From positions 1 through 64,000 of the forward strand of contig NW_025765270.1 in assembly GCF_003918875.1 (NCBI RefSeq): 64,000 bases of DNA, in the 5' to 3' direction. The position numbers were made by a program, and so were the translations under genes. The notes beneath the pieces are model-generated. The model saw only the letters and a list, made by a program, of their open reading frames with translations, made no database searches and was not told where the DNA came from. Positions within the stretch are counted from its first letter, which is position 1. Each line of letters opens with the position of its first letter. Source of the DNA: Haliotis rubra. Its lineage: Eukaryota. Below, piece by piece: positions 51,432 through 60,091 of the stretch.

Positions 51432-54400
51432 TCACTGAGGACAGACGGGCTGCAGGGGGTTGGGAAACTGGGAAACAACGGCCAGATGTTGAAGACCTGA
51501 AATATGAAAACAATCAAAATGAAATGAAACTTGGACTATTTATATCTTGTCGTTTTTGTTTGTTTGTTTGTTTGTTTGTGGTTTAACGGAGGTCTGTAAA
51601 TAATCGAGTCTGGACCAGACAATCCAGTGATCAACAGTATGAGCATCGATCTACACAATAGGAATACGGTGACATGAGTGAACCAAGTTGGCGAACCTGA
51701 CCACCCTTTCCCGTTAGTCTCTTCCAAAATATAACATGGGCTGCTTGAGACCAGTTCTAACCCGGATCTTCACAGGTTACCTTGAAGAACTCTCTTGTCT
51801 TCCCCGTTATTACACTTCTCTACTCTTTGTCATACGGTGACATGCGGTATGGAAGATTTGACCATGAAACATCGCTAACAATGTCTTATCGACGAACGGG
51901 AGTGTTTAGTGTTATGTCCTAGATATTGGACAGACTGGTCAAATAATAAACCTTGTCCTATAAACAGTATCACCTGTACCTTAACTCATGCTTTCTCATT
52001 TCTATGAGTCCAAATTATAAAGGAATATTAACTTTGCCAACTACATATGTGAACTAAACTAAGTACAGTGTATGTATTATCTAAGTTTCAACATAATGTA
52101 TCTGAGGGTCGGATGAATGTAATCCCTGCTAAAACTTGAATCGCTTACAGTTGGTATTGCCGATCAACACTGTTCACTGAATACGATGACTCACTGACTG
52201 ACTGAGTTAGGTTTTACACCGCTTTTAGCAATATTCCAGCAACATCACGGCGGGGGACACCGGAAATGGGCTTCACACGTCGTAACCATCTGGGAATTCG
52301 AACCCGGATCTTCGGCGTGACGAGCCAACGCTTTAACCATTAGGCTACCCCACCGCCCCTTGAATACGATGAACACACTGTATACCCCATCTGAGATATC
52401 TCTAGCTGCAAGAGGCTATCGTAGATTCCGGTTGTATCCTAGATCAAACTGCCTTTGTTAATTAGTAACGGCCCTGGGATTTCAGTGAAAGGTGGGGAAA
52501 AGACTTAAATCCCAAAATCAAAATGTAAAATCGCAACATCGGAGAGAATTTAATTCCCCGTATTCTGACATTGTTTAAACCCCTTTTTGCTCAGAAGCAA
52601 GGCTATTTTATTTTGAATTTCAGTCCTATCAGTTCAACGTACCAGCTACGCTGGATTGCAGCCCGGCGTTGTAGTCGCAGGTAACTTCGTTCCTCACGTT
52701 GTCGTCCCTGTCGTCAGTGTAGGTGTCGTTCTGGTCGGGCCCGCCAACCATGGCGCCATATAGGATTTGTGGGTTGGGACCTTTGTATTTCTCCATATCC
52801 CAGGAACAGGGTGCCGGAAGCAGTGGACACGAACTGCGCATGACAGGATATCAACTGTTCAGCTCACAGCAATTTAGTCTTGTGGCAGGGCTGTCTAACT
52901 GAGCACTTACGTATGTTTCAACGTACTTGTGACGCACGCATTGTGTCCAGCCAATTCCAGATCTTGAAACATACGAGTTGTTTATCAGTGTGATGGTGTA
53001 TATCTACTGCGTAAATGTAAAATAATAACATTCCTACCTTGCCCGGTGATGAAGTCTCTGTGGAGGGTTCTTACCAAACCCTGCTATAAAACTCCTTCCG
53101 GTGTCTCCCAGAATGTAGTGGATCTGACCTATCGCCCACTGACGGTACTGGGAAGTGTTGATACCTTCATCTGCTGCCACCAGGGCCAGATAGGCCATGT
53201 TAGCTGAAGGAGGACACAAGCAGTACATTCGGATGTTGTTAAATGTTGACAAATTTGAACTTCAAAGTATGTATTCCACACAGACTGTTTCATATTTTCG
53301 CCATTGAACATGAGTAAGTGAGTTTAGTTTTACGCCGCTTTTCGCAATATTCCAGTAATATCATGGCAGGGGACACCACATTGTACGCATGTGGGGAATC
53401 GAACCCGGATCTTCGGGGTGACGAGCGAACGTTTTAACCACTAGGCTACCCTACCGCCTCCATTGAACATGAAATAAGAGCATGTAATTCCAATTGGAAA
53501 TATTTATCTCATTACCATTGAAATACATAGATTATAAGGGCATCATTCACATCTATAAGTAGTGACTTAATCATCTATTTTTATTCAAATGTATGAAAAT
53601 GCAAAAGAATAATGGTAAATACATGCACGGTTCGATTGTTTACATATGCCAAAATTGCATTTCTTCCAGAAACAAGCGAAACTACCAGGATGACAATATG
53701 CAACTGCATCTTGATATCCTCTTGTTCCATAATTCAAAATCCAAACTTTACCCGATGGGATTATTATCTTACTTTCAAATTTACGGCGTTGTATGGCGCA
53801 AGTTGTTTTAACTAATAAATATATCAAATAAAAATAGTTTTGCCATACACTCGAAACCATACGTTTCATAAAATGAAACCCAGTTCCTGTTAATTCAAAA
53901 AACCCTTGTCCGAAACATTACTTTTTAATTTTCTTTTCGGAAATGTGTTCATTTATCTTGATTAATCTCCGGATTAATTAAGTTTCATGCTACTGTGTAC
54001 GGCAACCTGCCTGCATATCGAAGGGAGCCCCACTTTAACCTGAAGGCCAGGCATTTTGGCGTGTATGTCACAGAGCCCCCAGGTAGCCAGGTATTGAAGG
54101 TGGAGACGATGTCCTGCTGATAGATGCTCTTCTTGGTAGCCTCGTATAGCAGGATCTGCAGGTAAGTTGGTGGGTATTAACATATCTGCATGACATCCCT
54201 AGGCTGACAAATGCACACAGGTGTCGCAATGGATCGTCACTGTTTAGTTACGGTGATATATTGTACATGTATTAACGCAATTTATTTGGGGACATTTGTA
54301 CTTCCATCTCATGCATTCCGTATGATTTGACTTCTCTTTACTTGTCAGGTGTATAAGAAACGCCTTTTCAGGGGCGGATCCACCACCCCACAGAAACCCA

Positions 54401-57400: not shown

Positions 57401-60091
57401 CCCAGTGAGATCCTCCCCGTTTACCCCCTTGTCGTTGAGGGCGGAGTCCCCCCTCCAGGGGATCCTGTTGTCAGGGGGGAGTTTCCCGGATCTCTGAGCC
57501 TCGTAGAACAAGATGGACTTCATCAGGACCTCACCGTAGTTGTACTTGGTTGCCTGGCCACCTTGAGATCAATAGTTATTTAACATTTCCACATGGAGTT
57601 TCTAAAGTGGCTGTTAATACAAGTAAGGCAAACAAAACTCGCGTATTGTTAACTTCCGGGTAGATATCATTCCGCTAGATATCAAAAGCGAGCTGGAACG
57701 ATGTGTGTGTGTGTGTGTGTGTGTGTGCGCGCGCGTGCGTGCGTGTGTATGCGTGCGCGCGTCCGTGTGTGTGTGTGTGTGTGTGTGTGTGTGTGTGTGT
57801 GCGCGTGTGTGTGTGCGCGCGTATGTGTGTGAGGGGAGAGGCGCGAGCCTCTGTGTCTCTGTGTGTGTGTGTGTGTGTGTGTGTGTGTGTGTGTGTGTGT
57901 GTGTGTGTGTGTGTGTGTGTATGTGTCAGTGTGTGTCAGGGTCGGTGGTNNNNNNNNNNNNNNNNNNNNNNNNNNNNNNNNNNNNNNNNNNNNNNNNNNN
58001 NNNNNNNNNNNNNNNNNNNNNNNNNNNNNNNNNNNNNNNNNNNNNNNNNNNNNNNNNNNNNNNNNNNNNNNNNNNNNNNNNNNNNNNNNNNNNNNNNNNN
58101 NTGGGTGGGTGTGAGAGATGGAGAGGCGTGTGTGTGTGTGTGTGTGTGTGGGGGTGGTGGTGTTGGAGGTGTGTGTGTGTGTGTGTGTGTGTGTGAGATG
58201 GGAGAGGCGTGTCTGTGTGTGTGATGGGACAGGCGAGTGTGTGTGTGTGTGTGTGTGTGTGTGTGTGTGTGTGTGTGTGTGTGTGTGTGTGTGTGTGTGT
58301 GTGACGAGTGTGTGTGTGTCAGGGGTGGTGGTGGAGGTGTGTGTGTGGTGTGTGGGTGGGTGGGTGTGAGATAGTGAGATATGTGAGAGGCGCGAGTGTG
58401 TGTGTGTGTGTCAGGAGTGGTGGTGGTGGAGGGGGGTGTGTGTGGGTGTGTGTGAGTGATGGGAGAGGTGTGTGTGTCAGGGGTGGTGGTGGAGGTGTGT
58501 GTGTGTGTGTGTGTGGGTGTGTGGGTGGGGGACAGGATATGCTCATGGTTTCCTAGTTCACCTAGTATAATCAGTATCTGATTCTGATTATGACAAAGTC
58601 AGACTCTTGCGGTGGGCTCTGTTTTTGAAAATGGCTCTTGTCACTCTTTATTTGACTGATCTTAAGTATACCAATGAATCTAGGACGTTCACCTTGTTAC
58701 AGGCGTCCGATGAGTTCAGTGTTCCAGTACAAACTACAGGATACTTATGTTAGAGTTTGGAATGAACATTTGACACAGATGAATCTATATTGTCAGAGTA
58801 GGAGCTGACACATACCTGCACCTGTCGGTGCTGTTGGAACGGCCTGCTGGGCATGGGTGAGATCCCGTAGCACTCCTGTAGCAGTGATAACAGAAGAACT
58901 GCACCTGTGAACCTGCATCTTGACACACACATGTTCCCCTGAGTAGTGGACGCCGTTGGGGGGCTTGTTGACCATCTTCACTTGTGTAAAGCAGGCACCA
59001 GTAGAGGGAGAGATGATATCACCATCAAATTCCTGACAATTCAAAACGCCACATAGTTATCAATAAAACACAAGTTCCAGTGTTTAAGGAAGCGTAAAGG
59101 TTCAATATATAGATCATAACATGGCAAAAGCATAGCACATCATATCTTATGAAGTAAATCCTCTGATTGCCAAACATGTCGAGAGTTATGTAATCAGGCC
59201 TTTGATGGTGAAACTTTCATTACGAACCTTCGCTTACCAAAACTTGTCTTTACGTCAAATTAGAAACTTTACACTAGATATTGTCCGTAATATAGGAACC
59301 ACTACCTTGACTCAGAAACATGTTTTGCTGTTTACAACCACACTGGTTGTTTGTCATCATAAACAGGCGTGTGGCGTTATGGACGCATCATTGGTTCGTC
59401 CGTCACAAATTTGATCATTATTGCTAAGGACAGTAATAAACGATATTTCAGCTTAATGAAGGCGGCCTGCAAATATTCTGTACCGGACATTCCCAGGATT
59501 GGTATTAGAGAGTGTATCACAGAGAACTGCAAGGTTTATGTGATGAGTTGTCAAAGGCCCATAGCCAACTTACAACAGTATTCTTTTTAGAATAAGCGTT
59601 GACATATGTCTGAGCAAGAATAAGTCCAGCTCGTAGGTCCGAAAGAGGTTCAGTTGGAATTTAGAAATACCTTTCTTGATTATATATTATATACTGAATT
59701 CTTATTAATGTTTTTTTATCAAACCTAAAACTATTTCGTCTTTCTTATGTAGCAGGGCGTGGTGTCATCCCATAGATGACATTCTCACCTTGTCAGTTTG
59801 CTGACATAGTAACCTCTTTGGTCATGTGGACAAGATGTCCGACTTCGGATCAGAAGGTTCATAGTTCGAATCCCAGCACGTGACTTGGAAAGTTATGGCC
59901 GCTACACTTACACTAAGATCCTTTACCGGTGTGCTGAAAGTCACATCAAGTTCCCAGCCCAGGATGTCGGCTTGTAGGTCGAAACAGAATGATCCGAGCA
60001 ATGTCTGTCCCTGCTGACTCGTCACCTGCATCGTCGTTGTCATGTCGCCGAGGACGCCCCATGCCAACGTTGACAACAACAGTAGTCGCAT
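51432..60091 (-). CDS. GH9 cellulase-like gene C: signal peptide + CBM2-like + GH9, 581 aa, open frame, altered catalytic motif (DAGG)
   Basis: 11 coding exons (minus strand): 60091-59912, 59032-58816, 57561-57388, 56398-56214, 55588-55429, 55116-55005, 54785-54635, 54155-54011 (GC donor), 53203-53038, 52833-52643, 51496-51432 (1746 nt). Motifs: [63 protein letters not shown]. Minus-strand AATAAA at 51357-51362. Confidence 0.92.
52190..52359 (-). mobile_element. SINE family 1
   Basis: Full length; TSD tgaatacgatga. Confidence 0.85.
53314..53459 (-). mobile_element. SINE family 1 (small internal deletion)
   Basis: TSD ccattgaacatga. Confidence 0.8.
54369..54517. mobile_element. MITE with CAGGGGCGGATCC termini and 5-bp TSD (ctttt)
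   Basis: caggggcggatcc ... ggatccgtccctg. Confidence 0.65.
56898..57063. mobile_element. Penelope-like inverted-repeat remnant with a hammerhead-like motif at 56944-56983 (-)
   Basis: Hairpin aaatgaaacatacaacttt...aaagttgtatgtttcattt. The minus strand reads AGC-UUGAUAA-C-GGUGU..ACAUC-GAAAC-GUC-GCU. Confidence 0.65.
57702..58530. repeat. Compound (GT)n microsatellite spanning an N-gap
   Basis: Long GT runs interrupted by GC/GGT motifs, in gene C intron 2. Confidence 0.97.

Follow-up and report, generated by a model that had tools for sequence, protein, structure and literature searches.

Gene Structure and Locus

We analyzed a 64,000-nucleotide stretch of the Haliotis rubra genome (contig NW_025765270.1, positions 1 to 64,000; hereafter the window) and focused on gene C, a GH9 gene whose conserved, selectively maintained product lacks the aspartate regarded as the general base of the family. 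Gene C lies on the minus strand and extends in 11 exons from the ATG at 60091 to the stop codon at 51432. The spliced model, built under the guidance of ortholog proteins, translates exactly to the H. rubra protein XP_046558728.1/XP_046558729.1 (P0287 in our collection), named "endoglucanase E-4-like," and the H. rubra record QXJH01000134.1 matches the window at 100% identity with coinciding coordinates. All 10 introns have AG acceptors, and the donors are GT in nine cases and GC in one. The initial annotation had given the gene an extent of 52643–57561. This interval contains eight minus-strand exons, seven of which individually match Pfam Glyco_hydro_9, and correctly covers exons 3 to 10; two upstream exons and one downstream exon had been missed.

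Exon 1 (59912–60091), placed by the exact spliced model, contains the ATG, the signal peptide, and the first half of an N-terminal domain assigned a CBM2 fold by structure model and Foldseek; exon 2 (58816–59032), supported by the spliced model and our alignment A1, completes that domain and adds a short linker. The GH9 domain starts in exon 3 (57388–57561; Pfam PF00759 positions 1–55), which ends with ..GGWYD and the first base of an Ala codon. Exon 4 (56214–56398), supported by the spliced model and by profile and phmmer matches, supplies the remainder of the Ala codon and then Gly-Gly (AGGNTKF...). The TGDGAYEH region follows in exon 5 (55429–55588), and exon 6 (55005–55116) is taken from the spliced model. 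Exon 7 (54635–54785) encodes, within DENSW, the Asp-Glu pair that in other GH9s belongs to the calcium site and, within AWGFSWDE, residues of the cleft (compare PMC4579020). Exon 8 (54011–54155), in which the cleft Trp, Arg, and Tyr are kept, ends with ..KWGSLRYA and is followed by the GC donor. Exon 9 (53038–53203) encodes ..QRLHHRA, with a conserved Pro replaced by Leu and His-His-Arg kept, and exon 10 (52643–52833) encodes ..DDNVRNEV.., its donor GTACGT lying just below 52643. A TGA beyond this donor was considered as the stop of gene C and rejected: it is intronic, and the orthologs show a further exon. This exon 11 (51432–51496), supported by the spliced model and the orthologs, contains the C-terminal tail and the stop codon.

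Several repeats lie in the introns of gene C. An N run at 57950–58101 sits in intron 2 and is surrounded by long (GT)n/(CA)n-type microsatellite sequence (57617–58600). Very high-copy short repeats are found at 53310–53460, 54900–54970, 55790–55950, and 56940–57100, with a summed contig depth of hundreds of thousands to more than ten million in comparison with ~100 in the flanks. The first two of these regions share a common motif, ..GGGGAATCGAACCCGG.., which we read as tRNA-derived and which points to a short interspersed nuclear element. An inverted-repeat element is located at ~56900–57060, also within gene C.

Glycine at the Catalytic-Base Position

The motif of gene C reads W-Y-D-A-G-G on the minus strand: GAC (Asp) at 57391–57389, an Ala codon split by a phase-1 intron (G at 57388 and CC at 56398–56397), GGA at 56396–56394, and GGT at 56393–56391, the last encoding Gly193. 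In a phmmer search against the PDB, residues 1–61 of exon 4 aligned without gaps to residues 57–117 of Thermobifida fusca Cel9A (1JS4), so the second residue, the Gly, falls on Asp58; the same Gly aligned to the D of "GD" in the earthworm enzyme 3WC3. Asp occupies this position in 150 of the 155 other GH9 domains collected, so that a chance resemblance is of no concern, and in a search with exon 4, exon-sized open reading frames from other molluscs all read AGD, with at most 75% identity. The replacement of DAGD by DAGG is present in the sequence as the initial annotation had claimed, and so are the other substitutions it had listed relative to genes A and B, the neighboring GH9 genes (QVG..DH to QTG..EH, DELAW to DENSW, RPHHR to RLHHR, and DYVRNE to DNVRNE).

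The C-terminal Asp of DAGD is described as the catalytic base and the N-terminal Asp as an essential supporting residue (PMC6032398), and both, together with the acid Glu, are reported to be invariant in GH9 cellulases (PMC4221708). An assembly error at the GGT codon was considered and rejected: contigs from two DNA samples, both of one organism, confirm the codon and show no difference there. Record 7 of contig X1 (56349–56563) shows three differences from the window, all of them elsewhere, in the intron, while record 16 of contig X2 (56349–56660) shows none. As the X1 record departs from the assembly within the intron, it is not simply the assembly's own data.

Conservation and Selection in Haliotis

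Orthologs of gene C were taken from the 90%-identity cluster of the H. rufescens ortholog. Besides that species, the cluster represents H. cracherodii, H. asinina, and H. rubra, with four RefSeq proteins in all. WYDAGGNTKF is found in all four. The initial annotation had proposed checking the codon in reads and in related species: GGT appears in both samples, DAGG in 4/4 orthologs, and GAT in none. In H. rubra and H. asinina the Gly is encoded by GGT, in H. rufescens and H. cracherodii by GGC, in comparison with GAC or GAT in the sister paralog. The pattern points to a single A-to-G change in their common ancestor and a later silent one.

We rebuilt exact 11-exon models at the four Haliotis loci. 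Exon lengths are equal among them, apart from a difference of one codon in exon 1, which is the shorter in H. asinina. Acceptors are AG throughout and donors GT, except that of intron 8, which is GC in H. rubra and H. asinina and GT in H. rufescens and H. cracherodii. The catalytic-acid Glu is present in 4/4 orthologs, no frameshift or stop interrupts the reading frame, and the splice signals are complete, in agreement with the earlier description of gene C as keeping all three.

The ratio of nonsynonymous to synonymous substitution rates (dN/dS), computed with NG86 and YN00 for the pairs among the four species, was 0.08–0.17 (at the widest, 0.08–0.21) for the whole protein and 0.05–0.13 for the GH9 domain alone, with dS of 0.06–0.63. 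As a control, we used the tandem sister paralog (XP_046558730), which bears DAGD and also has 11 exons; in three species it lies 20–30 kb upstream of gene C and is oriented alike. Its dN/dS, computed for the same pairs of species, was 0.05–0.16. The purifying selection on gene C is indistinguishable from that on its DAGD sister.

Losing a residue held to be essential might suggest a decaying or recently disabled gene, a private mutation, or a sequencing error. We consider such explanations very improbable. The same Gly is found in four species separated by dS of ~0.5, dN/dS is ~0.1 and not near 1, all splice sites are intact and frameshifts and stops absent across four genomes, and GGT recurs in independent contigs. 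A contrast is offered by the neighboring gene B, which has a frameshift and a missing exon. A private mutation or allele was likewise rejected, with the same Gly in four species at dS up to ~0.6. With DAGG fixed in four Haliotis species, the same exon structure, and a dN/dS as low as that of the DAGD sister, the evidence bears out the initial suggestion that gene C is maintained and not decaying.

Lost and Retained Residues

A tree built from 49 molluscan GH9 domains unites the gene C orthologs of the four species in one clade with full support and places it among Haliotis-specific paralog clades, the patellogastropod sequences falling outside. The stem of this clade is 0.30 substitutions per site long, in comparison with 0.16 and 0.11 in the two sister Haliotis clades, and the branches inside it are 0.005–0.03. 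Two proteins of 565 aa, P0288 (H. asinina) and P0289 (H. rufescens), belong to the 90% cluster of the sister paralog yet show a tree branch of 0.82, and may be mis-modelled isoforms or a strongly divergent copy.

We then compared the clades with ~150 other GH9 domains. Among columns conserved in at least 90% of the domains, the gene C clade departs from the family at 8 of 128, and among those conserved in at least 95%, at 3 of 85; the corresponding numbers are 1 of 123 and 0 of 85 for the sister clade of ~580 aa and 2 of 124 and 0 of 86 for the sister clade of ~730 aa. In the gene C clade, Asp58 has become Gly; in exon 5, where the adjacent His125 is kept, Val118 has become Thr and Asp124 Glu; Leu replaces the Pro before His376, His replaces a Pro at residue 283, and three further columns have changed. 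The Cel9A residue numbers other than Asp58 were assigned from the Cel9A sequence; they agree with the published His125, Tyr206, Trp256, His376, Arg378, and Glu424. The tool alignment bears out Asp58 and, through the termite enzyme, the acid Glu.

The conserved Tyr that precedes the acid Glu by four residues (Tyr420 in Cel9A, Tyr419 in Cel9I, and Tyr408 in the termite enzyme) is replaced by Asn in H. rubra (AAC at 52698–52700, minus strand) and H. asinina and by Thr in H. rufescens and H. cracherodii. This position is Tyr or Phe in 94% of the other GH9 domains, and Tyr419 is among the cleft residues shown to bind oligosaccharides (PMC4579020). The equivalents of Asp55, His125, Tyr206, Trp256, Trp260, Asp261, Trp313, Arg317, Tyr318, His376, Arg378, Glu424, and Tyr429 are kept. 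Apart from the Tyr420 equivalent, all mappable cleft residues of PMC4579020 are retained, as is the calcium-ligating Asp-Glu pair. The first Asp of the motif (Asp55) and the acid Glu (Glu424 in Cel9A, Glu412 in the termite enzyme; GAA at 52686–52688, minus strand, in H. rubra) are present in all four orthologs.

The retained residues bear on the possibility, which we regard as unlikely but worth serious attention, that gene C still encodes a working endoglucanase. The first Asp, or a water molecule or another carboxylate in the space freed by the Gly, might then serve as the base, with a reduced or altered activity that still matters physiologically. The first Asp is the postulated base of the exo-acting Vibrio GH9s, where the second is proposed only to position the water (PMC6096475), but elsewhere the second Asp is the assigned base (PMC6032398 and PMC4221708), and its presence in nearly all other domains argues against its being dispensable. 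A working enzyme would fit the conservation of the acid Glu and the first Asp, of the calcium site, and of most subsite residues, purifying selection equal to that on the sister enzyme, and the change, throughout the clade, of the conserved Asp beside His125 to the longer Glu; yet eight family-conserved residues and the Tyr420 equivalent have been lost. The split of the Tyr420 site into two different residues is what one would expect if its role in the catalytic site had lapsed. Furthermore, Asp58 mutants of Cel9A, studied by Zhou et al. in 2004 and Li et al. in 2007, reportedly lose nearly all activity.

The many substitutions concentrated on the stem branch, and the tight conservation after them, would also fit a neofunctionalized catalyst with another chemistry or substrate: a phosphorylase-like inverting scaffold that lacks a base and relies on an external nucleophile, a transglycosylase, or an enzyme acting on another algal polysaccharide. 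In accordance with this, the changes cluster in sequence near the catalytic center (residues 193, 195, 253, 259, 492, and 542) with the acid Glu retained, and the clade has its specific His in place of the conserved Pro at residue 283. However, no phosphate-binding motif was identified, the protein is secreted, and nothing in the present data separates such a catalyst from a protein with a binding-only role. We know of no GH9 with such chemistry and give this explanation little credence.

Protein Architecture and Predicted Fold

The protein starts with a plausible signal peptide. The GH9 domain matches Pfam PF00759 with 472.8 bits (cutoff 27.7), residues 141–556 covering profile positions 1–441 of 444. 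Its AlphaFold model, an (alpha/alpha)6 barrel, has a predicted local distance difference test (pLDDT) score of 95.9, and in Foldseek comparisons this predicted structure superposed on 8IHX, 4ZG8, and 3WC3, annelid endoglucanases among them, with a template modeling (TM) score of 0.97 and a root-mean-square deviation (rmsd) of 0.9 Å.

In the N-terminal domain, residues 16–135 have no Pfam match, and the CBM_2 profile matches neither the whole protein nor residues 1–135; paralogs match this profile weakly (E = 7.5e-5 for P0204 and E = 0.056 for P0292). Residues 16–135 are nevertheless homologous to the N-terminal module of most molluscan GH9s. The model of the domain (pLDDT 83.9) is a beta-sandwich, and its best Foldseek matches are CBM2 structures, those of C. 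fimi (6QFS and 1EXG), S. coelicolor (2RTT), and C. cellulovorans (3NDY), with a probability of 1.0 and TM scores of 0.55–0.64. In alignment A1, the first conserved Trp of the domain (consensus HW) is replaced by Gln in the gene C clade, the second Trp is kept, and the third aromatic is Phe or Tyr; these aromatics would correspond to the binding-face residues of CBM2a.

Neighboring GH9 Genes

Gene B (35453–42936, minus strand), which the initial annotation had used as an intact DAGD comparator, looks broken in this assembly. It has a 1-base frame shift at a C-run (39746–39749) inside the exon encoding ..RSGKLP, and in the gene, where 36501–37606 is a second place of note, the exon for residues 489–535 of the H. 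rufescens homolog P0204 (the DELxW..WGxSWD region) was not found. Gene B is either a pseudogene or an assembly error.

A segmental duplication relates 2664–9392 to 26497–37071 at 92–98.6% identity and takes in the 3' half of gene A, on the plus strand, and that of gene B, on the minus strand. Partial GH9 copies resulting from it are found at 2671–6193 and 7776–8812, and extra last-exon fragments at 33003–33203 and 33987–34073.

Discussion

The analyses firmly show that gene C is a real, ancient, genus-wide, and selectively maintained secreted GH9 without the residue considered the general base. As to its function, we lean, at somewhat better than even confidence, toward a protein whose hydrolysis is abolished or greatly weakened and which would act noncatalytically as a glucan binder, helper, sensor, or decoy. 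The functions suggested by the initial annotation, a glucan-binding or cellulose-loosening helper, a pattern-recognition protein, or changed chemistry, are all candidates. As in pseudoenzymes, a residue required for the chemistry of the family is absent (Asp58 replaced by Gly, with the Tyr420 equivalent also lost; PMC6032398 and PMC4579020), and purifying selection has retained the gene across four species. Because the protein retains the proton-donor Glu and the first Asp, as well as the calcium-site Asp-Glu and almost every aromatic or basic residue of the cleft, a glucan-binding protein is the most likely outcome; the retained cleft, judged by these residues, would still bind beta-1,4-glucan.

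The history that we propose starts with tandem duplication, by which gene C would have arisen as an abalone paralog of the digestive GH9 endoglucanases. In the ancestor of the sampled abalones, the general-base Asp turned to Gly, apparently through a single A-to-G change, and around the same time several other family-conserved residues would have changed, including the sugar-binding Tyr near the acid Glu. Afterward, purifying selection has been as strong as on the DAGD sister. The derived protein, its hydrolysis abolished or cut by orders of magnitude, would bind beta-1,4-glucan and hold, present, or disrupt the glucan chains for the neighboring active GH9s; alternatively, it might sense or sequester glucans.

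Several observations weigh against a noncatalytic glucan binder. The first Trp of the CBM2-fold module has become Gln and the cleft Tyr420 equivalent is lost, and these losses argue against simple high-affinity binding of cellulose. By analogy with the exo-acting GH9s in which the first Asp is proposed as the base (PMC6096475), a Gly at the second position may leave some activity, and the catalytic base may have been relocated. The retention of the acid Glu and the first Asp is equally expected of an enzyme still catalyzing something. Finally, the four sequencing runs containing the gene C locus are genomic DNA contigs and silent on expression and splicing; RefSeq models of gene C exist in four Haliotis species.

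A bolder proposal is that the Gly, the co-occurring changes at the catalytic center, and the acid Glu together mark either a GH9 of new chemistry or a nonhydrolytic, cellulose-disrupting partner that boosts the neighboring active GH9s. We find this doubtful; if true, the function would be without precedent both in GH9 and in the digestive system of an animal. The glucan-binding helper or sensor that we favor would, if true, add GH9 to GH16, GH18, and GH28 as animal glycosidase families with maintained pseudoenzymes and be relevant to the digestion of algal feed in a farmed animal.

Gene C is named "endoglucanase E-4-like" in four abalones despite missing the residue regarded as the family's general base, so counts of abalone and mollusc "cellulases" include at least one conserved noncanonical member. 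The locus also provides a natural experiment: two tandem paralogs of the same architecture, constrained equally strongly by selection, carry different residues at the catalytic base.

Comparison with Known Systems

The closest known counterparts of gene C are the animal GH9 endo-beta-1,4-glucanases, such as earthworm EF-EG2 (3WC3), the Perinereis enzyme (4ZG8), and termite NtEgl (1KS8). They belong to the same family, share 50–52% identity with gene C, and superpose on its predicted fold at TM scores of 0.96–0.98 and rmsd of ~0.9–1.2 Å; they have the acid Glu, the first Asp, and most of the cleft residues in common with it. Unlike in these enzymes, the base Asp of gene C is replaced by Gly, the Tyr420 equivalent by Asn or Thr, and six further residues conserved in at least 90% of the domains have changed. 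The digestive cellulases of abalones have an N-terminal CBM2, and the molluscan paralogs share the secreted CBM2-plus-GH9 architecture of gene C.

Replacements of the base have been described before: Asp to Gly in a few sea-squirt isoenzymes and Asp to Asn in a Medicago GH9, with the activities undetermined (PMC6032398, citing Davison and Blaxter 2005). The sea-squirt GH9s thus share with gene C both the position and the replacing residue. In our census, proteins of 900–1000 residues from Ciona savignyi and Clavelina have Gly at the base position but have also lost the acid Glu (..QSSV..), whereas gene C keeps it. As gene C nests inside the gastropod GH9s, the tunicate and abalone Gly arose independently. 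We found no report of the abalone DAGG clade in the literature and, in the paper library searched, no paper citing the four RefSeq accessions; the replacement itself being known from sea squirts, the abalone clade appears to be a new case of it.

GH9-like domains without the base Asp and the acid Glu were also seen in P0208 (Clavelina), P0278 (Ciona savignyi), P0280, and P0160 (Pinctada), proteins of 840–1000 aa that may represent a widespread degenerate GH9 family. Their neighbors in the hit list, P0165 from H. cracherodii, P0166 from a cockroach, and P0220 from a crab, are tandem double-GH9 proteins. WYDAGG was further found in P0041, an unrelated eukaryotic GH9 fragment on a 206 kb contig (ENA ERZ25073789; L008:3001–3666). 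It has no intron within the motif, reads IPLRGDS in place of IPWRGDS and RSDKLP in place of RSGKLP, and is an independent loss of the base Asp.

Maintained pseudoenzymes derived from other glycosidases provide a possible functional parallel. The GH16-derived beta-glucan recognition proteins and the GH18 chi-lectins are animal examples, and GH28 polygalacturonase pseudoenzymes of beetles are maintained beside active digestive paralogs (PMC8213348). Like gene C, these are secreted paralogs that miss a catalytic residue and are selected alongside active copies. They differ in fold and family. Gene C, whose expression, binding, and inactivity are predicted, has lost only one of the two base-side carboxylates.

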